Shown: piece after piece, positions 193 to 64,000 of the stretch
Layout of the letters: the number at the start of each line of letters is the position of its first letter
Numbering within the stretch: position 1 is the first letter of the stretch
Source: Octopus sinensis
Taxonomy: Eukaryota
Direction: 5' to 3'
Assembly: GCF_006345805.1 (NCBI RefSeq)
Contig: NW_021832123.1
Location: forward strand, 182,140-246,139
Length of the DNA: 64,000 nucleotides
Notes under the pieces: model-generated
Told to the model about the DNA's origin: nothing
Databases searched by the model: none
What the model saw: only the letters and a program-made list of their open reading frames with translations
Made by a program: the position numbers and the translations under genes

Positions 193-1183
193 GGCGACTT
201 CTTATAAACATTGACTTTAGAGTAATGTATAAACTCAAAAAACACAAGAATACATTATTTGTTCAATCTCAGAGCGTTTCATAAGACCCCTTTTGTATAG
301 AACTACTTAAGTTGCGAGTTGCGTGTAATGTTCAAAATTCGTTTGTATTTTGTTTGACAGACTGCGATGTTCTATATTAAAAATACTGTTTGGGATAATT
401 TATAGATGATACAAATCCGTCTATAAATAAAAATACATCCTGCTTCTCTAATAGTGACAAGACTAATGCAAAATGAATAAGTTTTTTTCCATAACCCCTG
501 AATTGCACATCAGAATGGCAACCCAAGCACAAACAACAAACATAACTAGCTAATCAAATGCAAAGAGTTATTTGTACCGATCAACATACACCTCCAAATT
601 TTCTTACTTATATAGCAAATAAATTACCAGCTTTTAGTTAGAATAAGTTAATTTTAACCTCAATCCAATGTTTAAAGAAGTAGGTTCTTAATAAATGACA
701 ATGGCCTTATTTTGTACGGTTCGGTAGGGGCTCAAGTTAAGAAATATGACATCAATATCTGCAATTTAGTTATACATTGCCAAATTGAATGCTTTATCAT
801 ATTTATATATTTTTTGAAAATGTGAAAGTACTTAACATAAGTTTCTTTAATTTAATCGTTTTGTTGTTCGTGATTAAAAATTTCCACATTGAAATGATAA
901 TAATTTTCCATTTATATTTTTCTTTAAAACTTTGAACTTGAACTATTTTTTAACATCTAAATAAAGTTGACTTTGATAGTAATGAATATTTCATTCTCGA
1001 AGAGTCCATTAACTTTAGAAGATATAGGTAATATCAAGTTTGTGATTTTAGAAAAATAAAATGCAAAATGATAGTCGAATACTTTTAAAAAGCCGACATT
1101 CAAATTTACTTTTTTGAAACTGTTTGAAACATGTTTTAAATAATCGAATCACAAGAGAAAACATCAAGGAAAAACGTGATCAC

Positions 1184-2930
1184 TCAACTCGACTGAGAGG
1201 CGGCACACGACTGACCCGAACAAGTCCTCGGTCAGTCCTCATTTGTGCCTCCTTCCAAACTACGCCCAAGTCATCCCCAACTTTCATGTGACTCTTCAAT
1301 CCATCATACAAATCCTACCAAAATACGTGGAAGCACTTTTTTCTTAGCATTAAGTTGAACTTGATTTGTCTGAGGAGGAAATCCATCAAAATAAACGACA
1401 TCCCCCGCCTGTGACTGTTCAGGCACAATCAACGGCTCCACTCTGCCAACATCACCACAAACCAAACGTCTCCCTCTCCTCTGATTCATCCCTCCTTCCC
1501 TTAGCACACATAATCATCCCCTCAGACATAATCCCCCGCAAATTCGCCGGCTTCAAATTCACCAAAAACACAAAATTATTTCCCGACAATTCCTCTTCAG
1601 TGCACGAATTCACCAACGAAGAACAAATTGTGAGTATTCGGCCTCCCCCCACGTCTACCCTCTCCACAAATAACGAATCCGCGTTCTCGTGCTGCCACTT
1701 TGATTAAAAAACTAACTTTTTTGACGGAAATAATTTTCCCAACACGGAAATCGCAGACAGTGGGGTCAGAAACAACGGATTCAACGGTAGGGGTCACCAC
1801 ACGTGCTTTATTATCACCAGGATACGCCGAGGTGACAATCTTCTGCATTTTTGGCGACTCAAACGCCTTTAGAATTGGGGCAAGAAGATAATTTATTTCC
1901 CGTGAAAGTGCAGCCTTGACATCGGCAGGGTGAAGTTTAAGAGACAAAAAGTCCTCCTCAACCTGCTCGTAGGACAAGTACTCGACAGTCCCCAATTCAG
2001 GAGACTCAACAAAGAAGACTTTGACAGATTTAAAGTCGAGGATTGGAAACACGACCATTTTAAGAAATGCGAGGACTCCGTTGTCCTCGAGTGACCCCGG
2101 CATACAGAAAGCCTTCCTGATTTTATTTTGAACCACTTTGGGTGGGTCAAGAAAGTCAATTTTAGAATCAATGTCTGAAGCACTCATTTTGCCCCCCGTC
2201 AGTCCAGGAACTACAATGAGGGGGAAATAGTGACCCATTGGGTTCATCAAATGAGCTCTCTTGGCATACCCCAACTGTGGGAGGTACTTTTCCGCGAATG
2301 TAAAAATCTTTCTTTGATCGACTCCCCCGAACTGAGCATCCACTTTGAGATATTCTTCATCGAGTGCCTGAAGACAGGGATAAAGCAATCCCCCAAGGAG
2401 AGGATGGTCCACTTGTTTGACCACCTCACTTCCTGCCTTCCTGGCATCGTGTTGAGTCACCAAAGTGGTCATTTTAAACATATCAATCACATAGTTCCTA
2501 TTTGTAGTCAAAATTACTCGACCTGTCCAATTGGTAGTCAGTGCCCTTCACAAAAACAAGGTCGTCGGTGGGGATTCCCAACGAGGACATGACTGCGGAT
2601 ATCACCTCCCGGTAGTAATCCACTCGGTGGTTGACCAGGTCCCAACCGGCCTTCAGGTTATCGAGAACAGCGTGGAGATCTGCCAAGAGAATTGTGACTT
2701 GGCAGCCCGCTTTGAGGAGTTGTGCTATTTTTACTAGTGGCACAAAATAGCCAATGTGGGGTTTCCCTGTGGTGGCGGTTCCCCAGTACACTTTGAGAGG
2801 GCGATGGGAAATAATTTCTTTTATTTTCTCCTCTCCTAAGACTTCCTAGGAGTCTTTAATGTGATCTAACCTGCAGTCCTCGTGTTATTAAAGAATATTT
2901 CTCATCAACGTTTACAACCACACGTGACAT
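1184..2930 (-). CDS. YARS1: Cytosolic tyrosyl-tRNA synthetase with C-terminal EMAP-II-like domain, copy A (multi-exon, micro-introns)
   Basis: [14 protein letters not shown] (HIGH), [34 protein letters not shown] (KMSKS), EMAP-II motifs DFRVGKI and [18 protein letters not shown] 2930 and TGA 1184 after splicing 24-25 nt GT-AG introns. Confidence 0.96.
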
Positions 2931-4932
2931 TTAATTAATTAATGCTGTTGACAAAAAAATTACAATTTTAAATAAACATTCCCAACTTCATTCTCAAAAA
3001 AAATTGAACAAGTCAACAAACAATATATTCTCTCTGTACTAAATTACGCAAGTTTAAAGTGGGTTTTCTGTCTATCTACATGTTCCACTATAATACTTTG
3101 ATCAGTATAAAACAAGGCTATGAGCCTGAAATGAACACTCATCGACCATCTGGACTATTATGTGACATGGGCTGCGCGATACCTATGGGCCGCGTGATAC
3201 CTGACGTGACCTTGAAATGTGCAATTATGACATTGATGGGATTAAATTATAAATCTTTTAATTAGACCGCGACTCATTCTTATCATTTAATAATTTACTA
3301 AATTAGCTAAAGACTCTCTCATTTTGACAAAAAATTATATTTGTAGGAATTTAATTATCAGAAATTGATTTTTTGGTGGAAAACCTAAATTTCTTGAGTT
3401 ATTTCTAGCGTGCAAGTATATTTTGCAGCAATGTCCTCGTACAAAGGTTATGTAAAGAATAGTTTGGAATATCAAATTTTAAAAGATGCTTTACAGGATA
3501 AATTTCATGAACATCTTACAAAGCAAAAAAAATATAGACTAGTTAAGAAAATTGAAAATTTTACTGTAATTAATGAAAGGTATCATACAAATTGTAAATG
3601 TATAGATTGTATCTTAAATGTGAGAATTCAGATCACAAGCTAGTGATTTGTCTAGACAATGAACCCGAAATGGAAATCGTTGCTAAAAGTTTGCATGACT
3701 TCTCGCATGGAGGAGTTAACAAAATTGAATATGAATGTCGACAACGATATTTCACAGTTAAAAATGAGATTATTCGAAAAGTCATTCGAAACTGTGAAAT
3801 TTGTAAATTTGCGCGACCCTTAAAAGTTTTAACTTTTTTAAATCCTAGATTGGAGATATAAATAACCATGTCTTTGCACTTGCCCAAATGAAAGATTTCA
3901 GATAGATCTTATAGATCTGAAAAGTTTTTCTACTATAAATAAAAATTTTAAATGGATTTTAACGGTCATTGACGTATATAGCAGGTTAGTTTTTTCAACA
4001 ATTTTTATAGATTTGCATTTGCGAGGCCGCTCTACACTAAGTCCTCAAATGAAGTTTGTGAAAACCTCAGATCATTATTTTTCTTAAATGGTCCGTGTCA
4101 ATTTCTTCAGTCCGATAATGGGACTGAATTCAAGAATCGTGAAATGACCAATCTATGTGAGGAATTCAATATCAAACGAATTCACGGAAGGCCAAACAAT
4201 CCCCGCTCACAAGGGATTGTCGAACGCTTCAACCAGTCAATTACAAGAAAAATGGCAAAAATGATCGACAATGATAATAAAAAGTGCCTGAAAAAATTAG
4301 AAAATGCAGTGTACAGTTATAACATTTCTGTCCACTCATCTTCTAATGAGAGCTCTTTTGAAAGATACCGGGGAATAAGTGGAATAAATACAATATTTTA
4401 TGGTTGTAATTATAAAATTATTTCTTAGATAATTGAAGTAATGATTTGTTGAGTCCTGATCAAGTCGATGATGCAAACAATTGTCCGAGTCCAATTGAAA
4501 ATTCATGTAATTTGAATTTCTATATGTAGATGATTGTAATTATTCGTTTACAAGTCCGAAAAGATTTCAGTTCGAAATCAACCTCATTGATCCTAATTCT
4601 AATTATTACAAAGCGATGAACAGAAAAATGAATGTTTACAATAGTAAGTATGAATTTAGTGTTGGTGATAAAGTATGCATAAAAATTAATGTTTAGGTTC
4701 GAGTTAAAAAAGACTTTGGAACAAATCCTTCGTTGCGACTGGATAAGTTTGAATCTCCATATTATCCATCTGCAGAAATTATCAGTATTTTATCAAACAA
4801 TCGCGTTGAGGTAGTTTAAACATTTAAATTTAATAGATAAAAAATTCGATGAGCGAAATTTCGATTGTGCCAATGTCCAGACTTAAAAAATAATTAACAA
4901 GTTATTATTCTTTGAAGTTTAATATTAATTAC

Positions 4933-5527
4933 GAGTACGGTTTGCATCCCCTCGCTTGCCGGCGGAGTGCAGGTCGTGCCCCCCGTCACAGTGAACTCAA
5001 CTCAGTCATACAGAGAGCCCTCGCTTCAGCAGGCATCCCGTCAATCCTTGAACCTGTTGGATTGGATAGAGGGGATGGCAAACGCCCTGACGGCATGTCC
5101 ACCTTCCCCTACGAGCAGGGGAAATCCCTTATTTGGGATTCTACCTGCTCGGACACGTTCTCGCTGGGAAATCTCGCTCTGTCCGCCGCCAATCCTGGGC
5201 ACGCTTCCAGGCAGGCCGAGGAGCGAAAGATTCTCAAGTACGGCCACCTCTCCAACTCGCTGCTCTTTACTCCAATTTCCGTGGAGTCCTCCGGGATCTT
5301 CGGTCCCAAGACACTCCGCTTCCTTCGCTCGGTCGACGGATTACAAGGACTAGTCACGATCCAAGAGAGTTTTCTTGGCTTCTGGAACGTCTGTCGATTG
5401 CTGTGATCCGAGGGAACGGCTTCGCCATTCGCGAGGCTGGTCGGGTGTCTCGTGAGGCCTTTAATTAACTTAGCTATCTTTAATTTCTTTCTTGCTTTCA
5501 TAACAAAGATTTAATATTAAAAAAAAA
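4933..5527 (+). mobile_element. 5'-truncated CRE-clade (RLE) non-LTR retrotransposon
   Basis: HPLAC...RH zinc knuckle, KRPDG...WDSTC...ERKILKY...PISVESSG RLE endonuclease, LERLSIAVIRGN C-terminus, A-tail, TSD aatattaattac (4921-4932, 5528-5539). Absent from copy B. Confidence 0.82.
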
Positions 5528-5544
5528 AATATTAATTACAATAT

Positions 5545-5615
5545 CGTGAGGCCTTTAACTAACTTAGCTATCTGTAATTTTTGTCTTGTTTTATTTCCAA
5601 AAAAAAAAAAAAAAA
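5545..5615 (+). mobile_element. ~70-bp 3' end of a related CRE subfamily with poly(A) tail
   Basis: cgtgaggcctttaactaacttagctatct matches the 3' end of the neighbouring CRE but has a different distal UTR; ~A19 tail; TSD aattacaatat (5534-5544, 5616-5626). Absent from copy B. Confidence 0.72.
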
Positions 5616-5958
5616 AATTACAATATTGACATTAAGTTAAGCTTCAAGGTCACGTCAGGTATCACGCGGCCCATAGGTGTAACGCAAACCATGTCACATA
5701 TTATACTAATCTTCTTAGAACATCCAAATATAAAAAAAACACAATTCCTATTCGTTTCCCGTAAATCCACTGCTCTAAATGTGCTAAATAAAAAATGGTT
5801 GTTCACTGAAGAATACGCCTGAAAAGCAATACTCCTAACTCAAAATTAATGGCCGAACCAATTTCACATCCAATTAAAAGAATTCACGATTTTATTTAAA
5901 CGTCGACAATTCTAAGGTTGACACCTAACTCCATTCTCAATAAATTTCCACCGGATAT

Positions 5959-8016
5959 TCATCCCCTTAAATACTTGTTAACCGTTCGCTTCAGATTAAT
6001 CTTTCCTATTTCCGCTCTCGCAATTATCATTCACTACACTCACAAATCGAACAACTCGATCTCTCCTTTTTCAACCTTTGTCGTGTTGATGACCATTCGA
6101 CTGAGCACCTCAACCGGTGTCCCGGTTCACTTCCCTATAAAGTCCATTAGACGCAGTCGTTAGAGAGGATCTCATATCTTGATGTGTTATGCAACAACAA
6201 CATTAATCAATTGACTGTTACCAATTAAACAGACCACGCAATATTCCTTCCTTTCTTGGTCTAAACTCACACGGGTATTCCAGTCGTTGGAAAGCAATGT
6301 CAAAATACATTGGTTTCAGAGACATGTGCGTAGATTCTGAATATCCCAACAACACATTACTCACGGCCTGAGATTAGAACCCACAAATACCCGAATTTGT
6401 TCACTCATCGACACATCCCCCAACATACCACACATGACTTCCCTACTCCACTCCCGAACTTGAGAAAGGGACGATTCCAAGCACGTAATCCAAAAGTCCC
6501 AGTCACCTCCGTCATTCCTCAGCACTTGAATCACTCTCTCAATGCCACTGTCACGACAGTAATTCACTACTTGTCCATACTTCTTCTTCTGCATGAGACT
6601 CCTCACTTTGTTAAATGCCCTGTGGATGAGACATGGAGAAATCACCCGAGAGCACAGCAAATGGTCTGTTCGTGCTTCATCCTCTCAAAAAGACAGACAT
6701 CCTCCCTCAAAGACAACATCCTCATCAGTTTATCAATCCTCTACAATACTAGACCAGCCAGTACAGCTGAAACACGACTGTAGAGGCAATAAAGACGTTC
6801 ACTTATGGTTTTATTCGGCCTATACTTCCCTCTCCTGTATTCGTGGGTAGTCCCCTTCCCCTCCATTGAGCCGATTATCAGCCAATCTCGTTTATTCGAG
6901 TATATAAGCGTCCAATAATATACAAACACACACACTGCGTCACGTGGACTCACATCCCCCACAGACATGTCCAACAATTCCTCCATTTTCTACAAAAATC
7001 GACTCATTTTCAATTTACTGATATTTTTAGCCTCGGTCTCATTTTATCCAAAAATTTCCCCCCATTTATAACTAATTGCTGGTAGTTTGAAAATGTCTCC
7101 TCGTTTTTTTCCATCAAAATGAAATAACTCTCCAAAAACGCACGAAAATGCTCATTTTTGTTTATCTGAGAATCAATTTCGACTGGTCGACCAAACACAA
7201 ACACTTCTCTAACATGACCCTTACCCACATTTGCATCCTTCACTAAATTAGCACATGTACCAATTGGTCAATCCCCGACTCCTCCATTTGGACAGCCAAT
7301 TCTGCCTCAGCTGAATCCCTCTGACTGTAATGACAGATTTCCAGCTGATTATTAATCTCCTCCACCATCTGGGAATACTCCTCCCTGTGGGACGAATACC
7401 CTTACTACCCAACAGGCCATAAATCCGCCTAAATTACTAATAGTGCGGCTTAACTTTGATCTGTTGAATAAAATGGCAGCAGAAATCCACTCTTCGTTGT
7501 GAAATGAACAGGTTGCCTTCACCCACGTTCAATAGGCCTCAATTTCGTGGTTGGTTAAGGACTCGATGACCTCAATTCTCTCCTTTCGTACATTATTGAG
7601 AATATTGGCCAGAATAGAGGCTTTCCTGAGTCTTCTTTTGACGCGAAATCGACTTCTTGTATTTCCAGATGTTCGGAGGAGGGATAATGCCTGGGTTAGA
7701 CACCGTTCCACTAAAAAGACACACATTTCGAGATATCTAGTCCTCACCCTAATACGATTACCTCGAGTTGGTGAGATATTCAGCAGTGATTGGCCTTGGA
7801 ATAAAATTGTTTTTTGTCTTGCATTTTAAATTGAGTGATTTTCTGGCACGTTGAATGACACGTGTGCAGTGTGAACTATAACTTGAGTAGTCGCTGTACT
7901 GTAGTCCATATGTGTTCTGAGACCTTCTTACACTGTGGAGAACTATATATATTAAATAATCAAATACTTGGAAAGCAAACCAATTCGAACGAACTTTGAT
8001 CACCACCAGACTCCAT
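5959..8016 (-). pseudogene. SRP68: Signal recognition particle subunit SRP68, copy A; premature TGA at 7529-7531 and 1-bp deletion near 7395
   Basis: SQNTYGLQYSDYSSYSSHC, RYLEMCVFLVERCLTQA and RFRVKRRLRKA match the SRP68 N-terminus (QQQHGLRHGDFQRYRGYC, RYLLLVLMDAERAW, RFHLLSRLRKA). TAT TGA here vs TAT TGC in copy B. Confidence 0.85.
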
Positions 8017-8098
8017 ACACTCAAATATTTTATTTTTTATTCCATAACTAAACTATAAATAATAAAAAAATAATCAGGGAGTCTACTCCCAAAAAACA

Positions 8099-11000
8099 TT
8101 AAGAAAAAGGTAAATTATATTTAGCAGCACTACTCAATGGATACTGGTCTCTCTTGAGAACATGTAAAATATCCTTCAAAGTGATCCTCTTCGACCTCTA
8201 AAAATAAAATGGGAGACACACCATTTGATAGGAAGAGGCCTCCCCACCTCTGCTAGAAATCTCCCTTCTCCTCTGACCAAGAGCAGCCAAAGCCGTCTCA
8301 TTCGACTCCTTATTTCTGACCTGATCCTCATTCTCCTGTCTCCACTTTTTCACTTTTTTCTTCATCTCCAAATACTCCGGCTGAGAAAAACGTGCCTTGC
8401 ATTTGGATGCCTTGTTGAGACTCTCCATGGTGGACTCCTCCCTTCTCCGACTCTCCAACTCATTGTAGTCCTCAATATACCGCAACTGTGCCTTCACATC
8501 ATCCACCATCTCATATCGGGGGTCGTTCTACTCACTCAGTCCTCCCACCCAACCATATATTTCTCCGACCTATGTTCAGACACAGTGATGGCCTTCTCCA
8601 CCAACTGCCTCATAAAGCACTCCGTAGCCCTGCAAATCAACATGAGTGTCTCCATCGGTATTTCCTGAATGTTGTACTCCCCGGCTACACTCACTCACCC
8701 AACTAACCAATTGCTGTGAATCGTAGACAGAGGGCGTCCATCACTACTAGTAAGTCGTCCTTGTAGTGACTTAGGTGAGTGTCCTCACTCATTTCCACCA
8801 CTTCCTCAGTCGGGACCTCCCTCCTATCCTCATATCGACTCATAGGGGGTGTCTGCTTGACCAGGACGGGCACTTGTGGGGACATCATTCTCACAGGCAG
8901 TGGCTGATGTCTATATATATGTGGAGGAATAGGAATAGGAATAGGAAGTTTTATTGGAAACAGAGAAGGGTTAAAGGTTAGGGGGGAGTTTGTATAATGA
9001 AACAATAGGACTACCCTATCGACTTCTTCCCAGAAAAAAAAGAGACCCCCTCAAGTAAATTTTTTTTTTTTTTTTTTTTTTTTTTTCTTTTCTACCTCTG
9101 CAGGTACGTCCCAGTGACAATTGAGTTGGATTTATAACCACTTATAGCTTTTTCGACAGTTTCACCGACCATGGAGGATTTACTTTCAAGCCACAGGGGG
9201 ATTGGATCTTCAACTTTTTGGTGGTAAGCAAGCTTCAAAGCGAGCCTGCGAGACTTTTCAAATTTAGTTAAGATGGTGTCCTTCTTTTTAGAGAAGTACC
9301 ATCCCTCTTTTCCGTATAGTAGTCCCGGTAGGATCACCGTATTGAAAACGTAGAGGAAAGTATCAGGCTCCAAATTTAACTTCCTCAGGCAGAACAGAGC
9401 ATTAGTTGCTTTCCTTTTACTTAATTTTGCGTTTTCGAGATAGTTTCCCTTTTCATCGATGAACAAGCCAAGATATTTAATTGAGTTTTGTCGAGGTATG
9501 TTCTTGATCAGGCACGGTAAATTTATTAAATTTCTGCTTTCTGTGATTCTCAGTAATGCGGACTTCTCACGCGCAATAATGAACATATTTTCATCGCACC
9601 ATTGCTCCACTGTATTCATATATGATATAATCCTTTGTTCGGATAAGGCAGGTTTCGATGAAATGTCAAGGATTACAACATCATCGGCGTATATCAAAAT
9701 TTCCGTCCATGTGTTGACAGGAGACGGCAGATTGCTCATCACAATGTTGAATAATAGAGGACTGAGGACTGATCCTTGAGGGACGCCTCTTTAAGTTTCA
9801 GTTCATCCGAGTCATAGTTCAGAAAGCTTATCACAGAGCGCCTGTCGCGGAGGAAGTCTTTTAGCCATAGGAATAGTCCTTTGTCTATGTGACACTTCGC
9901 CAGATGTCTAAGGAGACCGAGGTGCCAACCATATCAAAGGCTTTTGAGATGTCTAGAGAACACAATTGTCAGACACTCTTTGAAATCCAGAGCCTTTACA
10001 ATCGACGAATGAGTGTATAAAGACAGTCAGCACAGGAACGACCCCTCCGAAAGCCCCACTGCACGTCTTTGAGATAACCATTTCTCTCGACGTGTTCAGA
10101 GAGTCGTTCAAACATTACCCTTTCCATTATTCGACTGATGGTAGGAATTAGGCTTATAGGCCTATAACTTGTCGCCAAGTAACCAGGTTTTCCAGGCTTC
10201 CGTATCATCCTTACCTCCGTCAGTTTCCATGAAGAAGGGACGTATCCCAAGCTCACACTGCGGGAGAAGAGACATCCCAAATATTCGTAAAGTTGCTTGG
10301 GAGCTTCTTTGAACATGCGCATGGTTATCTTGTCCTTTCCCGGAGCGTTATTTTGGAGTATCTAACTGCATTTTCCACGTCTTTGCACGTTATAGATTCC
10401 GAGCACATTGGTAATGAGCTAAGATTGTCTTCCAACTCTTTTTCCATATCAAACAAAGCTGAATCAGATAGATTTGTATCCGGATTGACTTCTTGTATTC
10501 TTTTGAGACTATCAGCAAATATGTTCGGGATTTCTTCATGAGATGCAGGGGATCCATCTTGTTTTAGCAGTTTAGGTATAGTTTTCTCAGACGTCGAGGT
10601 TAATTTCGAGTAGACCTTCCAAAAATTTGGACTTCCTTTATGTAGCTTTTTGCACTCAGTATTCCATTTTTTATCCTTCGCCACCTTCGCCGATTTCTTA
10701 TTTCTTCCGTAATGGTGAAGATTTCACTTTCCAAAACGGACCGGTCACGAAAATCTGCGCAGCGCCGGAGTTTGTTCCTTAGACATTGTTTTTTCCTTAG
10801 TAGGATTTCAACATTCATGTTTGGCATGTGAGTTTTCCTATTGTTTGAGACGATTTTTGTAGAATATGTTTCCAGATAAGACTTTATGTATCCAATAAGG
10901 GAATTGCTAGACTTCTCGAGGTCCTCAGATGAAGAATTTTCGTCAAGTTTAGGAGCGAAATTGCTCAGATAAAGTGTAAAACATTTTCGGTAGTGTTCCC

Positions 11001-13387: not shown

Positions 13388-13589
13388 TTGTGGTTACTAT
13401 TTATTAAAACAAACAATGACACATTAAGTGCAATAATAATGCTCACAAGAACGATTTGAATATTTATTTTATTATACATTTAATTTTAATTAATATATTA
13501 ATTTAAAAAATCATGAATTTATTAACATATTAAATAGATAAACCGTGCAAAAAATTAATGAATCCTTATCAAGATTATGCTTTCTTTCG

Positions 13590-14870: not shown

Positions 14871-15510
14871 TGTGTCGACCATAATAATATAAATATTTGT
14901 AAAAAATCACAAAAACAGACAATTAATGACGAAACTATCCTATTTTTAGACACGAATAATACAGAAAATGTCAATATTGACGCAAAAAAATATGCAAATT
15001 ATTAACTAGTACATTTTTTCTTCAGCTAATGAACTCGACAGTCTTTTTATCAGAGCATTTCTTCTACCTTTGTCCTGTTCATCAAAATTGGTATGAACGA
15101 TTCCCGACTGTTAAGCCCGTATTTTTACTATTGACTTATCGTTCGCATGGAGATAAGCAAAAATTGTCAAATCAGCGATATCATGTAATGATCTTTCAAT
15201 TATGTTAAATGACTTCAAAAACTTCAAAGTCATTAGTCGTTTGAATATAATCTGGATTTTCTCTTTTTCATGACATTAACTTAAACAAATCTGTTTCGTC
15301 ATCCTCCGCAATAATTCTTTTTGATAAATGTATAAAATCCTATTTGGATTGTATTTACCAAATAAGACAACATAATTTTTCAAATCTTAAAAATTGTTTT
15401 CTCTGATTAAAATTTTATTCTTATTGTAATGCTAATTATTGATCGTTCTTATTCTATTGGGTTAGCTATTTAAATAAAATTTAGCGACTTTTTCAGTTTT
15501 CGATTAACAA

Positions 15511-24409: not shown

Positions 24410-24429
24410 GAATCAATTTCCTGGACCAA

Positions 24430-53984: not shown

Positions 53985-54775
53985 AGGCCTGTGGATAAAC
54001 GATGTTTGCAGTCCGTCCATCCTTGGCAAATATAAATAAATTTCTCTTCTACCTACCCTTGAGCACCCCACATACAGCTGGCCATGTGAAAAGCACTCGT
54101 TCTCTAAAAATAAGCCTACTACCTTTAAAGACTGTCCCTGGGCCTTGTTTATTGTCATAGCAAAACTTATCTTCAGCGGAAATTGTAGTCTCTTAAATCT
54201 ATCGCAGGCCCTTTCATGGTCCATAATAACGTCGACCGATTTATATATTCATTCTCTGCCAGGGATTTTCATTAATAAATCTAAATTTATATTAAGTACC
54301 TCATCATTAAGTGGAGCTAATATAGCTCGTTCACGCAGCCAGTCGAAATTCACGTAGTGTTCAGATAGTTCGGAATAGACGGCATTCAATAATTCTTCTG
54401 TTTCTACGAAAATACATAATTCTTCCGGTAGCCTAATTTTCTGGTCGTGCATTTCTGAAGTGATTGCCCCATTTCCAATATCTAGAAGGATTTGTGGGAA
54501 TATGCTATTAACGCCTTGTAAATGTGCATGTACATTTACATCTAAGCTTACCTTTTTCACGTGTGTCCACAAATATGACGATTTGAGGCAGGCATTCAAT
54601 TCATCCGCAGGCGTCCCTCTTTGAATAATTGGCAGCGTCTGTCTAAAATCACCTGCCAATACAACTAATGCTCCCCCAAACAAATGGTCGCTACAATTCT
54701 TGATATCTCTATATGTTCGGTCAACTGCTTGAATGCGCCTTTATGAGCCATCGTACATTCATCCCAAACAATTAA
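53985..54775 (-). pseudogene. Helitron PIF1-family helicase fragment
   Basis: [66 protein letters not shown]. Internal deletion; no HUH/Rep domain seen. Confidence 0.92.
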
Positions 54776-55493
54776 CCTAGAATGCATAATTCTATTACCC
54801 GTAGTTGAGTCTAACAGCAGTCCTGACCTTGTTCAGCTGTTGTCTAAGTTCCCTCACCATTTAAGCACATCTTCCTCGTTTCTCTTTTTTGTTATATGGT
54901 TCATATTCTCTTGTTTGTTAACATTCTCAGATCTCTCTTTATAGGACATTCTTATGATTTTGTAAACGCGAATCAGTAATTTATATTAAATTTTCTACGT
55001 AAATTTATTTAGTGAAATTTATGTAAAGTGTATTATCCAATCAAAGCCATTATACTTAATTGCCTCTATGTTTAAAGGAATTGAAACTTTAGCATAATCG
55101 AACTTGTCTGTTTCGGTAAAGAAAATGATAATCAGCTTCATCTTTGTAGTATTAAAAGGAAAAAAATTAAAGCCTGTTAAATCAAGGAGATTTAAATATA
55201 GGCAAATTGAAATTTACATGACTAATTTAATTTTATTTGCCTCTATCTTTTAAGAAATCTTAACAGTAGCATAATCGAATTTGTCAGTTTCGGCAGTTAA
55301 AAGAATCAATTATGTAAATCTCTAATAATTTTTGCTTTTTCCTTTTTAGTGGTTTTCAAAATCTGATAATTGCACAGTCTATTCATGGTCGATAACAATT
55401 AGAGCTTTTATTTTATTTTTTTAACGAAAATTTAACAAAAAAGAATTTATGTCATCGAAAAAAGATAGCTAAGCTAATTAATGGCCTCACGAG

Positions 55494-58400
55494 GCTTGAA
55501 GGTTGTGGAGGACCTCATCATGTGAGTCGAGGACTTCTTGTCGTTCATTTTAACAAAAACGCAGAAAATTTTTTTTTAATTTTTGGCTTGAAGGTTTTGG
55601 GGGACCACATCATGTGAGTCGAGGACTTTCTTGTCGTCATTTTACAAAAACGCAGAAAATATTTTTTTTTAATTTTTGGGCTTGAAGGTTTTGGGGGACC
55701 ACATCATGTGAGTCAAGGACTTTCTTGTTGTTCATTTAACAAAAACGCAGAAAATAATTTTTTTTAATTTTTTGGCTTGAAGTTTTTGGGGGACCACATC
55801 ATGTGAGTCAAGGACTTTCTTGTTGTTCATTTAACAAAAACGCAGAAAATAATTTTTTTTAATTTTTTGGCTTGAAGTTTTTGGGGGACCACATCATGTG
55901 AGTCGAGGACTTTCTTGTTGTTCATTTAACAAAAACGCAGAAAATAATTTTTTTTAAATTTTTTGGCTTGAAGGTTTTGAGGGACCACATCATGTGAGTC
56001 GAGGACTTTCTTGTTGTTCATTTTAACAAAAACGCAGAAAATAATTTTTTTAATTTTTTAGCTTGAAGGTTTTGGGGGACCACATCATGTGAGTCGAGGA
56101 CTTTCTTGTTGTTCATTTTAACAAAAACGCAGAAAATAATTTTTTTTAATTTTTTGGCTTGAAGGTTTTGGGGGACCACATCATGTGAGTCGAGGACTTT
56201 CTGTTGTTCATTTTAACAAAAAACGCAGAAAGAAAATAATTTTTTTAATTTTTGGCTTAAAGGTTTTGGGGGACCACATCATGTGAGTCGAGGACTTTCT
56301 TGTCGTTCATTTTAACAAAAACGCAGAAAATATATTTTTTTAATTTTTTAGCTTGAAGGTTGTGGAGGACCTCATCATGTGAGTCGAGGACTTTCTTGTC
56401 GTTCATTTTAACAAAAACGCAGAAAATATTTTTTTTTAATTTTTGGGCTTGAAGGTTTTGGGGGACCACATCATGTGAGTCAAGGACTTTCTTGTTGTTC
56501 ATTTAACAAAAACGCAGAAAATAATTTTTTTTAATTTTTTGGCTTGAAGTTTTTGGGGGACCACATCATGTGAGTCGAGGACTTTCTTGTTGTTCATTTT
56601 TACAAAAACGCAGAAAATAATTTTTTTTAATTTTTTGGCTTGAAGGTTTTGGGGGACCACATCATGTGAGTCGAGGACTTTCTTGTTGTTCATTTTAACA
56701 AAAACGCAGAAAATAATTTTTTTTAATTTTTTGGCTTGAAGGTTTTGGGGGACCACATCATGTGAGTCGAGGACTTTCTTGTTGTTCATTTTTACAAAAA
56801 CGCAGAAAATAATTTTTTTAATTTTTTAGCTTGAAGGTTTTGGGGGACCACATCATGTGAGTCGAGGACTTTCTTGTCGTTCATTTTAACAAAAACGCAG
56901 AAAATATTTTTTTTTAATTTTTTAGCTTGAAGGTTTTGGGGGACCACATCATGTGAGTCGAGGACTTTCTTGTTGTTCATTTTTACAAAAACGCAGAAAA
57001 TAATTTTTTTTAATTTTTGGGCTTGAAGGTTTGGGGGACCACATCATGTGAGTCGAGGACTTTCTTGTTGTTCATTTTAACAAAAAACAGAAAATAATTT
57101 TTTTTAATTTTTTGGCTTGAAGGTTTTGGGGGACCACATCATGTGAGTCGAGGACTTTCTTGTTGGTCATTTTAACAAAAACGCAGAAAATATTTTTTTT
57201 AATTTTTTAGCTTGAAGGTTTTGGAGGACCTCATCATGTGAGTCGAGGACTTTCTTGTCGTTCATTTTAACAAAAACGCAGAAAATAATTTTTTTAATTT
57301 TTTGGCTGAAGGTTGGGGGGACCACATCATGTGAGTCGAGGACTTTCTTGTTGTTCATTTTAACAAAAACGCAGAAAATAATTTTTTTTAATTTTTGGTT
57401 GAAGGTTTTGGGGGACCACATCATGTGAGTCGAGGACTTTCTTGTTGTTCATTTTAACAAAAACGCAGAAAATATTTTTTTTAATTTTTGGCTTGAAGGT
57501 TTGGGGGACCACATCATGTGAGTCGAGGACTTTCTTGTTGTTCATTTTAACAAAAACGCAGAAAATAATTTTTTAATTTTTTGGCTTGAAGGTTTTGGGG
57601 GACCACATCATGTGAGTCGAGGACTTTCTTGTTGTTCATTTTTACAAAAACGCAGAAAATAATTTTTTTTAATTTTTGGCTTGAAGGTTTTGGGGGACCA
57701 CATCATGTGAGTCGAGGACTTTCTTGTTGTTCATTTTAACAAAAACGCAGAAAATAATTTTTTTTATTTTTGGCTTGAAGGTTTTGGGGGACCACATCAT
57801 GTGAGTCGAGGACTTTCTTGTGTTCATTTTAACAAAAACGCAGCAAAAAAAAATTTTTTTTTAATTTTTTAGCTTGAAGGTTGGGGGACCACATCATGTG
57901 AGTCGAGGACTTTCTTGTCGTTCATTTTAACAAAAACGCAGAAAATATTTTTTTTTAATTTTTGGGCTTGAAGGTTTTGGGGGACCACATCATGTGAGTC
58001 AAGGACTTTCTTGTTGTTCATTTAACAAAAACGCAGAAAATAATTTTTTTTAATTTTTTGGCTTGAAGTTTTTGGGGGACCACATCATGTGAGTCGAGGA
58101 CTTTCTTGTTGTTCATTTAACAAAAACGCAGAAAATAATTTTTTTTAAATTTTTTGGCTTGAAGGTTTTGAGGGACCACATCATGTGAGTCGAGGACTTT
58201 CTTGTTGTTCATTTTAACAAAAACGCAGAAAATAATTTTTTTAATTTTTTAGCTTGAAGGTTTTGGGGGACCACATCATGTGAGTCGAGGACTTTGTTGT
58301 CGTTCATTTTAACAAAAACGCAGAAAATATTTTTTTTTAATTTTTTAGCTTGAAGGTTGTGGAGGACCTCATCATGTGAGTCGAGGACTTTCTTGTCGTT

Positions 58401-60074
58401 CATTTTAACAAAAACGCAGAAAATATTTTTTTTTAATTTTTGGGCTTGAAGGTTTTGGGGGACCACATCATGTGAGTCAAGGACTTTCTTGTTGTTCATT
58501 TAACAAAAACGCGAGAAAATAATTTTTTTAATTTTTGGCTTGAAGTTTTTGGGGGGACCACATCATGTGAGTCGAGGACTTTCTTGTTGTTCATTTACAA
58601 AAACGCAGAAAATAATTTTTTTAATTTTTGGCTTGAAGGTTTGAGGGACCACATCATGTAAGTCGAGGACTTTCTTGTTGTTCATTTTAAAAAAACGCAG
58701 AAAATAATTTTTTTTAATTTTTTAGCTTGAAGGTTTTGGGGGACCACATCATGTGAGTCGAGGACTTTCTTGTTGTTCATTTTAACAAAAACGCAGAAAA
58801 TAATTTTTTTAATTTTTTGGCTTGAAGGTTTTGGGGGACCACATCATGTGAGTCGAGGACTTTCTTGTTGTTCATTTTAACAAAAACGCAGAAAATAATT
58901 TTTTTTAATTTTTTGGCTTTAAGGTTTTGGGGGGACCACATCATGTGAGTCGAGGACTTTCTTGTCGTTCATTTTAACAAAAACGCAGAGAAAATATTTT
59001 TTTTTAATTTTTTAGCTTGAAGGTTGTGGAGGACCTCATCATGTGAGTCGAGGACTCTTGTCGTTCATTTTAACAAAAACGCAGAAAATATTTTTTTATT
59101 TTTGGGCTTGAAGGTTTTGGGGGACCACATCATGTGAGTCAAGACTTTCTGTTGTTCATTTAACAAAAACGCAGAAAATAATTTTTTTTAATTTTTTGGC
59201 TTGAAGTTTTTGGGGGACCACATCATGTGAGTCGAGGACTTTCTTGTTGTTCATTTTTACAAAAACGCAGAAAATAATTTTTTTTAATTTTTGGCTTGAA
59301 GGTTTTGGGGGACCACATCATGTGAGTCGAGGACTTTGTTGTTGTTCATTTTTACAAAAACGCAGAAAATAATTTTTTTTAATTTTTTGGCTTGAAGGTT
59401 TTGGGGGACCACATCATGTGAGTCGAGGACTTTCTTGTTGTTCATTTTAACAAAAACGCAGAAAATAATTTTTTTAATTTTTGGCTTGAAGGTTTTGGGG
59501 GACCACATCATGTGAGTCGAGGACTTTCTTGTTGTTCATTTTAACAAAAACGCAGAAAAAATATTTTTTTTAATTTTTTAGCTTGAAGGTTGTGGAGGAC
59601 CTCATCATGTGAGTCGAGGACTTTCTTGTCGTTCATTTTAACAAAAACGCAGAAGAAAATATTTTTTTTAATTTTTGGCTTGAAGGTTTTGGGGGCCACA
59701 TCATGTGAGTCGAGGACTTTCCTGTTGTTCATTTACAAAAACAAACGCAGAAAATAATTTTTTTTAATTTTTGGCTTGAAGGTTTTGAGGGACCACATCA
59801 TGTGAGTCGAGGACTTTCTTGTTGTTCATTTTAACAAAAACGCAGAAGAAAATAATTTTTTTAATTTTTTAGCTTGAAGGTTTTGGGGGACGACATCATG
59901 TGAGTCGAGGACTTTCTTGTTGTTCATTTTAACAAAAACGCAGAAAATAATTTTTTTAATTTTTTGGCTTGAAGGTTTTGGGGGGACCACATCATGTGAG
60001 TCGAGGACTTTCTTGTTGTTCATTTTAACAAAAACGCAGAAAATTGACTTGAAGGTTTTGGGGGACCTCATCAT
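55494..60074. repeat. Satellite array 1 within the Helitron, ~96-bp unit, ~47 copies
   Basis: Unit gcttgaaggttttgggggaccacatcatgtgagtcgaggactttcttgttgttcattttaacaaaaacgcagaaaataattttttttaattttttg, with variable homopolymer lengths. Confidence 0.97.
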
Positions 60075-60769
60075 CGAGGATATTCTTTCTTATTAAAATT
60101 TTTTGACAGGAAGGTTCTTAGAGGATATCAACCTTTTATTGTGCCTCATTATCGAATAACTACAAAAGGGAAGGTTTTGACAATTTGATCTGGTTTGTAA
60201 CAATTTGAATGTGGGTGTGCACAGACAGACAGACAGACACACACCATACCATTTTATTATTAAGATTTTCTACGTAAATTTATTTAGTGAAATTTATGTA
60301 AAGTGTATTATCCAATCAAAGCCATTATACTTAATTGCCTCTATGTTTAAAGGAATTGAAACTTTAGCATAATCGAACTTGTCTGTTTCGGTAAAGAAAA
60401 TGATAATCAGCTTCATCTTTGTAGTATTAAAAGGAAAAAAATTAAAGCCTGTTAAATCAAGGAGATTTAAATATAGGCAAATTGAAATTTACATGACTAA
60501 TTTAAATTTTATTTGCCTTTATCTTTTAAGAAATCTAAACAGTAGCATAATCGAATTTGTCAGTTTCGGCAGTTAAAAAGAATCAATTATGTAAATCTCT
60601 AATAATTTTTGCTTTTTCCTTTTTAGTGGTTTTCAAAATCTGATAATTGCACAGTCTATTCATGGTCGATAACAATTAGAGCTTTTATTTTATTTTTTTA
60701 ACGAAAATTTAACAAAAAAGAATTTATGTCTTCGAAAAAAGATAGCTAAGCTAATTAATGGCCTCACGA

Positions 60770-63245
60770 GCTTGAAGGTTGTGGAGGACCTCATCATGTG
60801 AGTCGAGGACTTTCTTGTCGTTCATTTTAACAAAAACGCAGAAAATATTTTTTTTAATTTTGGGCTTGAAGGTTTTGGGGGACCACATCATGTGAGTCGA
60901 GGACTTTCTTGTTGTTCATTTAACAAAAACGCAGAAAATAATTTTTTTTAATTTTTTGGCTTGAAGGTTTTGGGGGACCACATCATGTGAGTCGAGGACT
61001 TTCTTGTTGTTCATTTAACAAAAACGCAGAAAATAATTTTTTTTAATTTTTTGGCTTGAAGGTTTGGGGGACCACATCATGTGAGTCGAGGACTTTCTTG
61101 TTGTTCATTTTAACAAAAACGCAGAAAATAATTTTTTTTAATTTTTGGCTTGAAGGTTTTGGGGGACCACATCATGTGAGTCGAGGACTTTCTTGTTGTT
61201 CATTTTAACAAAAACGCAGAAAATAATTTTTTTTAATTTTTTGGCTTGAAGGTTTTGGGGGACCACATCATGTGAGTCGAGGACTTTCTTGTTGTTCATT
61301 TTAACAAAAACGCAGAAAATAATTTTTTTAATTTTTTACCTTGAAGGTTTTGGGGGACCACATCATGTGAGTCGAGGACTTTCTTGTTGTTCATTTTAAC
61401 AAAAACGCAGAAAATAATTTTTTTAATTTTTGGCTTGAAGGTTTTGGGGGACCACATCATGTGAGTCGAGGACTTTCTTGTTGTTCATTTTAACAAAAAC
61501 GCAGAAAATAATTTTTTTAATTTTTTACCTTGAAGGTTTTGGGGGACCACATCATGTGAGTCGAGGACTTTCTTGTTGTTCATTTTAACAAAAACGCAGA
61601 AAATAATTTTTTAATTTTTGGCTTGAAGGTTTTGGGGGACCACATCATGTGAGTCGAGGACTTTCTTGTTGTTCATTTTAACAAAAACGCAGAAAATAAT
61701 TTTTTTAATTTTTTGGCTTGAAGGTTTTGGGGGACCACATCATGTGAGTCGAGGACTTTCTTGTTGTTCATTTTAACAAAAACGCAGAAAAAATAATTTT
61801 TTAATTTTTTAGCTTGAAGGTTTTGGGGGACCACATCATGTGAGTCGAGGACTTTCTTGTTGTTCATTTTAACAAAAACGCAGAAAATAATTTTTTTAAT
61901 TTTTTGGCTTGAAGTTTTGGGGGACCACATCATGTGAGTCGAGGACTTTCTTGTTGGTCATTTTAACAAAAACGCAGAGAAAATATTTTTTTTAATTTTT
62001 TAGCTTGAAGGTTTTGGGGGACCACATCATGTGAGTCGAGGACTTTCTTGTTGTTCATTTTAACAAAAACGCAGAAAATAATTTTTTTAATTTTTTGGCT
62101 TGAAGGTTTTGGGGGACCACATCATGTGAGTCGAGGACTTTCTTGTTGTTCATTTTAACAAAAACGCAGAAAATAATTTTTTTTAATTTTTTGGCTTGAA
62201 GGTTTTGGGGGACCACATCATGTGAGTCGAGGACTTTCTTGTTGTTCATTTTTACAAAAACGCAGAAAATAATTTTTTTTAATTTTTTGGCTTGAAGGTT
62301 TTGGGGGACCACATCATGTGAGTCGAGGACTTTCTTGTTGTTCATTTTAACAAAAACGCAGAAAATAATTTTTTTAATTTTTTGGCTTGAAGGTTTGGGG
62401 GACCACATCATGTGAGTCGAGGACTTTCTTGTTGTTCATTTTAACAAAAACGCAGAAAATAATTTTTTTAATTTTTTGGCTTGAAGGTTTGGGGGACCAC
62501 ATCATGTGAGTCGAGGACTTTCTTGTTGTTCATTTTAAAAAAACGCAGAAAATAATTTTTTTTAATTTTTGGCTTGAAGGTTTGGGGGACCACATCATGT
62601 GAGTCGAGGACTTTCTTGTTGTTCATTTTTACAAAAACGCAGAAAATAATTTTTTTTTAATTTTTGGCTTGAAGGTTTTGGGGGACCACATCATGTGAGT
62701 CGAGGACTTTCTTGTTGTTCATTTTAACAAAAACGCAGAAAATAATTTTTTTTAATTTTTTGGCTTGAAGGTTTTGGGGGACCACATCATGTGAGTCGAG
62801 GACTTTCTTGTTGTTCATTTTTACAAAAACGCAGAAAATAATTTTTTTAATTTTTTGGCTTGAAGGTTTTGGGGGACCACATCATGTGAGTCGAGGACTT
62901 TCTTGTTGTTCATTTTAAAAAACGCAGAAAATAATTTTTTTTAATTTTTTGGCTTGAAGGTTTGGGGGACCACATCATGTGAGTCGAGGACTTTCTTGTT
63001 GTTCATTTTAACAAAAACGCAGAAAATAATTTTTTTAATTTTTTGGCTTGAAGGTTTGGGGGACCACATCATGTGAGTCGAGGACTTTCTTGTTGTTCAT
63101 TTTAACAAAAACGCAGAAAATATTTTTTTTAATTTTTTGGCTTGAAGGTTTGGGGGACCACATCATGTGAGTCGAGGGCTTTCTTGTTGTTCATTTTAAC
63201 AAAAACGCAGAAAATTGACTTGAAGGTTTTGGGGGACCTCATCAT
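60770..63245. repeat. Satellite array 2 within the Helitron, same unit, ~25 copies, more homogeneous
   Basis: Same unit; flanks duplicate those of array 1. Confidence 0.97.
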
Positions 63246-63850
63246 CGAGGATATTCTTTCTTATTAAAATTTTTTGACAGGAAGGTTCTTAGAGGATATC
63301 AACCTTTTATTGTGCCTCATTATCGAATAACTACAAAAGGGAAGGTTTTGACAATTTGATCTGGTTTGTAACAATTTGAATGTGGGTGTGCACAGACAGA
63401 CAGACAGACACACAGACAGACAGACACACACCATACCATTTTATTATTAAGATTAACGTGCATTTTTCTGATTATAAGGATGGAAAATATCGCAGTATCT
63501 TACAAAAACTTTAGGAAAAATATTAAAAAGGTACACCAAATTTTGTATTTATTAAAAGAGGATAATTCTTAAATTAAAAGTATACAGTACATGACCTGAC
63601 AAAAAAAACATTAGACCACAAATAACTAGTTTTAGAGCACAAAATAAGAAAATCTGACCCATCTAATAATCTTTGTGGTCTCAAAATAAAAAATGATCTC
63701 AGCGTGCAAAAACGTGTAAGAGAACTGTTCCCCACAAGAACGAAACGAAAATAAAGACATTTTATTTATTAAAAAATTAATAATAAAAATATCTAATTCT
63801 TATTTTTCGAACGAGATTTTTCTTTTTTTACAGATTCTAAAAATAATCGA

Positions 63851-64000
63851 CTAGCAATAACTCGATAAATATTTAGCGATCTCTCTATCAATTTTTTCAT
63901 TACTTTCTGCAACCAATATCCCGACAATAGAGTCAATCTCCTCAGTTATGTGGTCAGCCCTACGTTGGCATGAATTAGTACTTTAGTAATTGGTCGGGGA
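63851..64000 (-). CDS. BOD1: BOD1-like, copy B, last exon (partial at the window edge)
   Basis: Matches 17727-17876. Confidence 0.7.

Follow-up and report, generated by a model that had tools for sequence, protein, structure and literature searches.

A duplicated gene block with SRP68 disabled in both copies, in a probable dicyemid contaminant contig of the Octopus sinensis assembly

How can a block of genes be present twice in a contig and an essential gene be disabled in each of its copies? The question is raised by the window analyzed here, which is exactly the final 64,000 bp of contig VCDQ01000770.1 from the Octopus sinensis assembly (base 64000 being record base 246139, the contig end). 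The original prediction was of a duplicated block in which three genes, SRP68, TAF4 and TMC, are broken in both copies, and every lesion that it listed for them is present at its predicted position. The description as broken in both copies holds for SRP68 and TMC, and only arguably for TAF4; the puzzle that it posed survives for SRP68, is weaker for TAF4 and largely dissolves for TMC.

The contig and the extent of the duplication

Genes of the duplicated block can be read only once their introns, GT-AG and 19-34 nt long throughout, have been removed. Among animals introns so short are known only from Dicyema japonicum and myxobolid myxozoans (Hadjez et al. 2026, PMC13644364), and the source of VCDQ01000770.1 is most likely a dicyemid kidney parasite, making the contig a contaminant of the octopus assembly. 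Likeness to D. japonicum (Lu et al. 2019, PMC6736024; PMC13644364) extends from intron length and the minimal GT(a)...AG signals to GC content (35.7% here and 36.7% there; PMC6736024), richness in transposable elements (TEs) and in LINEs, octopus as host and compact genes, with 82 bp from the TAF4 stop to the SRP68 start, the match to the species being one of described traits. Myxobolids have the intron trait in common, but their hosts are fish and annelids. The contaminant genome is probably only partially represented in the octopus assembly, and so absence from databases is weak evidence.

As assembled, the duplicated block is real and far above chance. Copies A and B (Table 1) are direct repeats, 37.8 kb apart, that align in 9 collinear blocks, agreeing at 12,567 positions and differing at 158 (98.76% identity), and 8 single-base indels accompany the 158 substitutions over 12.7 kb. 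Mismatch averages 1.24% and is distributed as a mosaic, from 0.16 to 4.6% along the block, which holds four genes, TyrRS, SRP68, TAF4 and TMC. The order is unique flank, A, a 20-kb middle block and B, with sharp boundaries; at the junction of the middle block with B (window 38148/38149, record 220287/220288) there is no repeat and no run of N able to cause a false join. The A-B match stops at 17873 for no other reason than that B, which takes up the terminal 25.9 kb, runs into the contig end. That end lies about 550 bp past a 9.6-kb Helitron with its satellite, where identity to A is 99.4%, and if the repeat is real assembler failure is to be expected just there. As the contig stops inside copy B, designation of 18-36 kb as a single-copy block is unsupported.

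Table 1. Features of the window (window coordinates; strand given where applicable)
Feature	Coordinates	Strand	Remarks
Copy A	376..17873		sharp left boundary at ATTAAAAATACTG
Middle block	17874..38148		Pin1-like, cadherin and MORN-repeat genes, TE fragments; once in window
Copy B	38149..64000 (aligned to 63997)		cut off by end of VCDQ01000770.1
TyrRS-A	1180..2930	-	536 aa, six introns of 19-25 nt, stop TGA, intact
TyrRS-B	38941..40691	-	536 aa, intact, 7 amino-acid differences from A
SRP68-A	6218..8016	-	eight introns of 23-29 nt; disabled by TGA and 1-bp loss
SRP68-B	45401..48413	-	71 N-terminal codons (48413-48174) and other 455 (46919-45401) clean; insert between
TAF4-A conserved C-terminal domain	8099..8888	-	238 aa, three introns of 23-26 nt, ORF intact downstream of LINE
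TAF4-A N-terminal exons (provisional)	12909..13387	-	proline-, glutamine- and threonine-rich; separated from C-terminal domain by LINE; predicted
TAF4-B	48496..49779	-	continuous; 12-bp in-frame deletion between 49009 and 49010
TMC-A	15511..17449	+	deletion 16832/16833, in-frame TGA 16714-16716
TMC-B	51799..63572	+	in-frame TGA, 71-bp insertion, Helitron
LINE, A only	8928..12908	-	reverse transcriptase ORFs, (CCTATT)n 3' tail, 12-bp target-site duplication (TATATGTGGAGG)
Ginger-like element, B only	46966..48173		1,208 bp, 39-bp TIRs, TGT...ACA termini, TATTC target-site duplication
Helitron, B only	53848..63449	-	9.6 kb; on minus strand TC start, CTAG end, hairpin just before end
Degenerate integrase-bearing element, A	3249..4932	+	Integrase_H2C2 and rve; in both copies
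Tc1/mariner element, B only	42147..43730	+	TA target-site duplication, CAGT...ACTG termini, DDE_3 transposase ORF
Retroposon, B only	41010..41530	+	521 bp, poly-A tail, AAATT target-site duplication, internal 186-bp tandem duplication
Retroposon, A only	4933..5615	+	683 bp, poly-A tail, AATTAC target-site duplication

Condition of the genes and the pattern of insertions

Both copies of SRP68, as assembled, are disabled. Copy A has a nonsense codon, TGA at 7529-7531 in place of the Cys codon TGC of B, and a frameshift from a T-run at 7394/7395 that is 1 bp short (TTT to TT), both within the RNA-binding domain. In B the predicted Ginger insertion, a non-autonomous integrase-type DNA transposon with TIRs, lies inside the coding exon between ...ITAEY and LTNSR...; the splice sites of this copy are clean and its RNA-binding domain is conserved. 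The lesions of the two copies are independent, fall within the RNA-binding domain and include none common to both. Those in A are unlikely to be sequencing noise, since about 2,400 validated codons, from TyrRS and the TAF4 C-terminal domain of both copies, SRP68-B and the 3′ half of TMC-B, are free of frameshifts and stops. No intact SRP68 was found in the collection searched, which holds no other data from the same species, and function must come from intact alleles that the assembly does not display or from another copy.

The TAF4-A LINE, 3,981 bp long, is the predicted insertion; it has the orientation of TAF4 and sits within the open frame '...RPPPHIYRHQ...', with the first Met of the conserved domain 40 nt downstream. 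Alignment of TAF4-A with human TAF4 is gap-free across the histone fold. The deletion forecast for TAF4-B is the gap opposite A 8613-8624 and takes the residues TECF out of the histone fold's helix alpha-2, though with frame kept and four residues gone 'broken' goes too far. At least one version of TAF4 plausibly still works.

TMC is broken in both copies. The domain deletion in A proved to be of 156 bp, not 162; it shows AGTG microhomology, removes 'CWENYFGKNMYRLIL...EFNV' and, as 106 coding nt are lost together with two introns, shifts the frame too. There is also a candidate frame change in A at a T7 run (~15938-15955). The predicted Helitron in B lies 1 nt past the last splice acceptor of a 3′ half (53075-53824) that is consistent with splicing and alignable to TMC-1 and TMC-2, and a 71-bp insertion (52965-53035), absent from the earlier list, causes a frameshift. 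Besides the TGA of A, in-frame TGA codons occur in B at 53001-53003 and 53072-53074; a stop codon is apparently common to the copies, and TMC was probably dead before the redundancy-driven knock-out of block genes. TMC is not a housekeeping gene.

The fourth block gene, TyrRS, which the original prediction missed, is intact in both copies. TyrRS-A retains H at 159 and Y at 205, as conserved in other animals, and derived changes at these sites, H159Y and Y205C, are found in B alone. Just two TyrRS proteins of this type occur in a collection of 5.8 billion clusters, both from this contig, and any third relative there has at most 57% identity.

Recent insertions of mobile elements pepper the block. 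The Helitron lies between A and T, has PIF1-type helicase ORFs and contains a satellite with a 95-bp unit in about 80 copies (55493-63215). The degenerate integrase element of copy B (41536-44804) is split by the Tc1/mariner element, whose inverted-repeat arms of about 350 bp are 82% identical. Clean target-site duplications accompany six TE insertions, and three of these are in coding exons against a coding fraction of 0.47, which indicates no selection against hits in SRP68, TAF4 and TMC. Such lack of exon avoidance is the expectation for redundant genes, not for single-copy essential ones.

Origin of the two copies

TyrRS, SRP68 and TAF4 diverged between A and B under purifying selection. 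Their pooled pN/pS is 0.21, and so the locus was constrained and working until recently; the 18 nonsynonymous differences, against about 46 predicted if one redundant copy drifts freely (p = 2e-6), imply that redundancy is much younger than the A-B divergence. We tentatively favor, with a probability of roughly 0.45, a real duplication of recent date in which the redundant copies are being inactivated, with a pseudo-haploid consensus that omits intact SRP68 alleles. The duplication, possibly of a tandem unit, would have arisen recently in a dicyemid parasite whose DNA then contaminated the O. sinensis assembly, and in the living animal A and B would share a chromosome. Both copies would have started functional and selectively constrained, and may have been two diverged alleles joined by unequal exchange, an origin that would explain divergence equal to the species heterozygosity, 1.24% in D. 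japonicum (Lu et al. 2019, PMC6736024). Following redundancy the LINE, Ginger-like, Helitron, Tc1 and poly-A retroposon insertions of a highly active transposon population, with small mutations, would be knocking copies out, TyrRS being still intact in both and starting to drift in B. The consensus would have been drawn from a population of heterozygous parasites, in which intact SRP68 alleles presumably exist. Duplication is favored by the layout with its clean junctions, by a contig end where a real repeat would be expected to defeat an assembler, by TE insertions in exons, by the asymmetric drift of TyrRS and by the independence of the SRP68 lesions, as an essential gene could not be null in both of two simple alleles. 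Counting against it are the pN/pS value, an intact SRP68 not found in a collection that is uninformative for this species and, because they fit uncollapsed haplotypes too, the level of mismatch, its mosaic distribution and the location of B at the contig end. The suggestion that a live and a dead haplotype were scrambled gains indirect support from these haplotype-like features; decay of redundant copies, which the original prediction listed beside it and a third copy without choosing among them, fits the failure of TEs to avoid exons.

Mismatch at the D. japonicum level of heterozygosity, in a species whose assembly required HaploMerger against redundant allelic scaffolds (PMC6736024), also suits a false duplication, in which A and B are two haplotypes, or co-infecting clonal lineages, of a single-copy locus and the alternative version was appended at the contig end by the long-read assembler. 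Mosaic divergence and pN/pS resemble allelic polymorphism under purifying selection, and the confinement of both TyrRS proteins to this contig, with B at its terminus, points the same way. This explanation, the main rival, has an appreciable chance but is unlikely: independent nulls are impossible for two alleles of an essential single-copy SRP68, TE insertions are not depleted in exons, and a haplotig should carry the allelic left flank whereas B adjoins the end of the unrelated middle block with no shared repeat. A working SRP68 and TAF4 elsewhere in the parasite genome, leaving both copies here free to decay, would be the simplest route to tolerating two dead SRP68 copies, and database absence means little for a genome that is probably only partially represented. 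It is nevertheless improbable, as the pN/pS reflects constraint for nearly all of the A-B divergence, TyrRS is intact in both copies and lacks a third relative above 57% in the collection, and no SRP68 lesion is common to A and B.

It is also quite doubtful that the SRP68-A point lesions arose as errors of the consensus in a contaminant contig of low coverage, which would leave ordinary reciprocal loss, with a live SRP68 in A and a dead one in B, and the reverse for TAF4. Correction of both sites would give one usable copy per essential gene, the frameshift is a homopolymer change typical of long reads, and NCBI labels the copy-B gene model LOW QUALITY PROTEIN. However, that flag stems from tiny introns not being modeled, the nonsense change is a substitution and atypical for long reads, the single-base indels are in no excess over normal polymorphism, and the other validated codons are error-free. 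SRP68 is a core SRP subunit, as far as is known retained across animals, and its pN/pS of about 0.2, with the clean splice sites and conserved RNA-binding domain of copy B, argues against its having recently become dispensable, perhaps with full-length TAF4 and TMC, in an extremely reduced parasite. Loss at the level of the lineage is thus highly improbable, even with TEs striking exons freely, a TMC stop apparently common to both copies and a dicyemid complement of about 5,000 genes and 30 cells (PMC6736024).

Comparison with known systems

TIR transposons and other TEs with exact target-site duplications in housekeeping exons recall the germline-limited, transposon-derived internal eliminated sequences of ciliates, but comparable excision here is speculative, and the SRP68-A point lesions and the TMC and TAF4 deletions would be irreparable by it. 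Haplotypic false duplications, the target of purge_dups and HaploMerger, are resembled in the second copy being at a contig end and in divergence that equals heterozygosity and is mosaic, with large insertion/deletion polymorphisms; unlike them, the copies here are 20 kb apart, sequence unrelated to them lies between, the join shows neither a gap nor a shared repeat, and both 'alleles' would be null for an essential gene. Young segmental or tandem duplicates undergoing non-functionalization or reciprocal loss would differ in the relaxed selection expected of them, against the pN/pS of 0.21, and in SRP68 being disabled in both copies here, where position on one chromosome is itself inferred. 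They are matched in the near-identical multi-gene copies, in the independent disabling mutations and TE insertions, and in a TyrRS that is intact in both copies with one drifting asymmetrically.

Position and probable origin of the duplicated block

Comparison of the window with itself confirms that it holds a duplicated block, with two collinear copies, A (376-17873) and B (38149-63997), that share 12,567 matches against 158 mismatches (98.76% identity) and are interrupted by large indels. The window corresponds exactly to VCDQ01000770.1:182140-246139 of assembly GCA_006345805.1, the final 64,000 bp of a 246,139-bp contig, and it is the end of this contig that cuts copy B short. The 11.4 kb to the left of the window resembles no part of it, which rules out this flank as a piece of a longer tandem array and gives the layout as unique flank, copy A, a middle block of 20 kb, copy B and contig end. 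The middle block, considered single-copy (18-36 kb) in the original prediction, may well recur beyond copy B.

In the middle block, at 25281-25622, 30195-30662 and 31274-33601, are genes for a MORN-repeat protein, a Pin1-type protein with WW and rotamase domains (intact and encoded in a single exon) and a cadherin-repeat protein. Their frames are all open, and the lesions are therefore confined to the duplicated block. The middle block also contains a 110-bp inverted repeat, 99% identical (23360-23468 and 24304-24413), enclosing about 0.8 kb with ORFs (23511-24195), and this unit is probably a further transposon with terminal inverted repeats (TIRs). The product of a minus-strand ORF at 36497-36925 ('...NIIPVVLTWDGIVSKYFKKYL...') resembles the C-terminal part of a retroelement protein, and the ORF is joined by NCBI splicing to the copy B TyrRS model. 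Rfam and tRNA scans gave no matches.

Among 5.8 billion protein clusters, only two proteins have more than 57% identity to the TyrRS of the block; both carry the species name Octopus sinensis and come from this contig, one (P0006) carrying the TyrRS variants of copy A and the other (P0002) those of copy B. Dicyemids inhabit octopus kidneys, and the contig is therefore most likely dicyemid contamination, a reading that the octopus host of the assembly, the intron lengths and the GC and repeat content together make highly probable. The GC content of the window is 35.7%, and the genome of Dicyema japonicum has 36.7% GC, 49% repeats with many LINEs, and heterozygosity of 1.24% (Lu et al. 2019, PMC6736024). 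GT-AG introns as short as those found here are known among animals only from D. japonicum and myxobolid myxozoans (Hadjez et al. 2026, PMC13644364). A search of one literature library found no report of dicyemid contamination of this octopus assembly. The NCBI 'octopus' proteins on the contig are chimeras in which the TAF4 C-terminus is fused to TyrRS and to a flanking metalloprotease or transposable element (TE) ORF, and one of them carries a LOW QUALITY PROTEIN flag. Users of the assembly need warning that a 246-kb contig in GenBank, and apparently in RefSeq too, is very probably parasite DNA.

Ultra-short introns and the state of the four genes

Genes of the duplicated block, in window coordinates
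Feature	Copy A	Copy B	Strand	Remarks
TyrRS	1180-2930	38941-40691	minus	complete 536 aa in both copies; six introns
SRP68	6218-8016	45401-48413	minus	eight introns, 23-29 nt
TAF4, conserved C-terminal domain	8099-8888		minus	three introns; human TAF4 alignment E = 5.5e-23
TAF4, N-terminal half (provisional model)	to 13387	to 49779	minus	stop-free path with two introns only
TMC	15511-17449		plus	5' half partly resolved

All the validated genes have spliceosomal introns of 19-34 nt in which only GT(a)...AG is conserved (for instance within 1294-2870, 6368-7967, 8247-8707 and 53162-53676), and alignments with human or Caenorhabditis elegans proteins validate 23 of these. They are ultra-short in the sense of a median below 30 nt in genes conserved among animals. 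What could be taken for frameshifts in SRP68, TAF4, TyrRS and TMC are GT-AG introns of this length, and once these are removed the products align without gaps to proteins of human or nematode. One of the TyrRS introns (2211-2234, 24 nt) is in frame and stop-free, and a TMC intron at 53284-53311 appears to be GC-AG. The TAF4 stop codon and the SRP68 start codon, on one strand, are separated by just 82 bp (8017-8098), an extremely compact spacing. Reading of TGA as a sense codon, considered for the SRP68-A TGA that corresponds to Cys in B and for an in-frame TGA in both TMC copies, was rejected because TyrRS terminates with TGA and about 2,400 validated codons are without an in-frame TGA. Two derived changes at conserved sites of TyrRS, H159Y and Y205C, are present in copy B only.

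All of the lesions originally predicted are where they were placed, apart from refinements. SRP68 (Pfam PF16969, E = 1e-11) aligns to the RNA-binding domain of human SRP68 (5M73 and 4P3E, E about 6e-10) across a splice junction. In copy A a TGC to TGA change at 7529-7531 and a T-run at 7394 that has become one T shorter are both within this domain, about 135 bp apart. Copy B has instead a 1,208-bp element (46966-48173) within the exon encoding '...ITAEY/LTNSR...'; the ORF downstream of it, 455 aa long and clean, aligns to the human RNA-binding domain. The copies have no lesion in common, and a complete SRP68 ORF is absent from both. No intact SRP68 or third copy was matched in the 5.8-billion-cluster collection, whose sole entries from the species, as judged by the TyrRS control, are from this contig, which makes this negative uninformative.

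The C-terminal domain of TAF4, including its histone fold, matches PF05236 (E = 4e-29) and the histone-fold fragment 1H3O; the three upstream ORF pieces of the provisional N-terminal model have no Pfam match of any kind at E <= 0.1, the metazoan TAFH/NHR1 domain included. TAF4-A does carry a LINE, of 3,981 bp, that is oriented like the gene and sits in an open frame; the first Met of the conserved domain comes 40 nt downstream, and the C-terminal ORF of 238 aa beyond the insertion is intact. The 12-bp deletion in TAF4-B is also real; it is in frame and removes TECF from helix alpha-2 of the histone fold, a site at which TAF4-A aligns to human TAF4 free of gaps. Neither TAF4 copy is unambiguously null.

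The spliced 3' half of TMC-B, with six tiny introns, matches Pfam TMC (PF07810, E = 1.8e-6) and C. elegans TMC-2 (8TKP, E = 4.5e-8) and TMC-1 (7USW, E = 1.1e-6). It has the CWET-type motif and the transmembrane helices that follow it, which place it in the family; TMC-A is without the motif. The predicted deletion in TMC-A exists, with a size of 156 rather than 162 bp; it is flanked by AGTG microhomology and removes 'CWENYFGKNMYRLIL...EFNV' and two introns, and as it takes 106 coding nt it shifts the frame. TMC-B carries the predicted Helitron, one nucleotide past its last splice acceptor, and an additional 71-bp insertion in an upstream exon. In both copies an in-frame TGA falls between '...KLARFVFLIF' and 'LISINIF...', and no plausible intron removes it while sparing the transmembrane helix. 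The exon upstream of this TGA, queried alone, gave no PDB match, and the shared stop apparently lies in coding sequence, as judged solely by continuity of the frame and of the hydrophobic helix. A frame change at a T7 run, identical in the copies (A 15938-15955, B 52223-52240), has two possible readings, an intron of 35 nt with a micro-exon after it or a frameshift common to A and B, where T8 would restore '...CVFFFIPLIIFKVP...'. The claim that three genes are broken in both copies thus holds for SRP68 and TMC, each copy of which has disabling lesions, and is only arguable for TAF4, given its in-frame deletion in one copy and its intact C-terminal ORF in the other.

Mobile elements and divergence between the copies

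The Helitron in TMC-B, read on the minus strand, has the termini ...gttaA/TCTTAATAA...GAGCTAG/Tctaca, that is, 5'-TC and 3'-CTRR (TC...CTAG) ends inserted between A and T with no target-site duplication, and a palindrome (CTAGCTCAGCAG/CTGCGAGCTAG) forms the hairpin near its 3' end, features that identify it as a Helitron. The coding content found is confined to PIF1-type helicase fragments (PF05970, E = 3.8e-20), with a search for Rep that was non-exhaustive in an element that is mostly satellite. Most of its 9.6 kb (55493-63215) is occupied by about 80 copies of a 95-bp satellite with a 191-bp higher-order repeat, in two arrays (55493-60044 and 60770-63215).

Ginger elements have TIRs with TG...CA ends and, typically, a short target-site duplication of 4-5 bp. 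The insert in SRP68-B was correctly predicted to be of this type: its 39-bp TIRs are 87% identical, its ends are TGTCAC...GTGACA, and TATTC is present on each side. A Mutator-like identity, suggested by an apparent duplication of 11 bp, was rejected, as 6 of these bp are TIR and TATTC is the true duplication. The protein sequence of the insert runs collinear, with 39-64% identity, to that of an integrase element of copy A (3249-4932; Integrase_H2C2 and rve), and owing to an internal deletion the insert is without the rve core; this collinearity makes it a non-autonomous Ginger-like element, though an LTR-retrotransposon origin of the parent element is possible. The LINE in TAF4-A is recognizable as such by RVT_1 (E = 1.6e-15), a 12-bp target-site duplication and a (CCTATT)n tail. 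A Tc1/mariner element in B is identified by its ends (ta/CAGT...ACTG/ta), inverted-repeat arms of about 350 bp (82% identical), DDE_3 and HTH_Tnp_Tc3_2. The copies differ further by a poly-A retroposon in each and a 103-bp intergenic indel. Altogether there are six TE insertions totaling 17.4 kb in 12.9 kb of shared sequence, as against 158 substitutions, and three of the six are exonic where the coding fraction is 0.47, so that coding sequence has not been avoided. The locus offers a compact view of the speed at which transposons remodel a dicyemid genome.

Substitutions between copies A and B
Sequence	Synonymous	Nonsynonymous	pN/pS
TyrRS	12	8	0.20
SRP68	8	6	about 0.2
TAF4 C-terminal domain	3	4	0.34
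Pooled	23	18	0.21

The substitutions tell of constraint. For the pooled pN/pS neutrality is rejected (p = 1.5e-6), and so is free drift of one of the copies (omega 0.55), under which about 46 nonsynonymous changes would be expected (p = 2e-6). The TMC value of 0.47 comes from 11 differences only, with which neutrality and constraint are indistinguishable. Past constraint, taken with lesions that do not avoid coding sequence, gives a history of two phases, with the substitutions accumulating under long constraint and the disabling lesions in a recent period of tolerance.

Silent-site divergence is 2-3% and overall divergence is mosaic, at 1-2% in TyrRS. It is lowest, 0.16%, in a 3.7-kb tract (A 2889-6572, B 40650-45755) that has 6 substitutions but three independent TE insertions, and that either was recently homogenized by gene conversion or recombination or reflects a rate of TE insertion extremely high relative to that of point mutation. 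The peaks of 3-4.6%, about 20 times the minimum, are at 13578-14180 and 15685-17185; the former is intergenic between TAF4 and TMC and contains the 103-bp indel, which is without target-site duplication.

Explanations and known parallels

The favored reading, with a probability of roughly 0.45, is a real recent duplication for which intact alleles are missing from the consensus. Redundancy would have allowed TEs and point lesions to be tolerated in SRP68, TAF4 and TMC, and the Helitron of 9.6 kb with its satellite plausibly caused the contig to break just past it, within copy B. Had the duplication come from two diverged alleles through unequal exchange, divergence between A and B would equal heterozygosity and bear the signature of purifying selection, as is observed. 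As the contig would be a single consensus of a heterozygous parasite population, the disabled SRP68-A and SRP68-B may be on separate chromosomes; alternatively, intact SRP68 alleles may still segregate in that population. A duplication on one chromosome would provide a clean natural case of duplicates in mutual decay, with an essential gene surviving only through segregating intact alleles.

That A and B are instead uncollapsed haplotypes is doubtful, even though the position of B at the contig end, the heterozygosity of 1.24% known for D. japonicum, the mosaic divergence and the low pN/pS would all suit it, since an essential gene would then have two null alleles, insertions strike exons freely and B joins unrelated sequence. 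If they are haplotypes, the locus cautions that heterozygous contaminant DNA can produce, at the ends of contigs, artefacts that look like 'duplications with reciprocal pseudogenes'. A third copy elsewhere is unlikely, residual errors in SRP68-A are quite unlikely and outright loss of the gene is very unlikely, there being specific counter-evidence against each.

Dicyemids have been described as having circular DNA and a developmentally regulated elimination of DNA. It is conceivable, at the far edge of probability, that the exon-interrupting TEs (the Ginger-like element in SRP68, the LINE in TAF4 and the Helitron in TMC) are germline-restricted and eliminated from somatic nuclei; that the contig is then a germline-type copy of genes restored in the soma is just as improbable and finds no support here. 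Such elimination cannot explain the point lesions or deletions.

The chief new facts are a probable parasite contaminant contig ending in copy B, ultra-short introns, past purifying selection and an intact TyrRS pair. The pattern is like the ordinary non-functionalization that young duplicates undergo in genomes rich in TEs, and is similar also to haplotypic duplication, a well-known assembly artefact. No new mechanism is needed for this locus, and somatic elimination of TEs is the sole reading that would be new.
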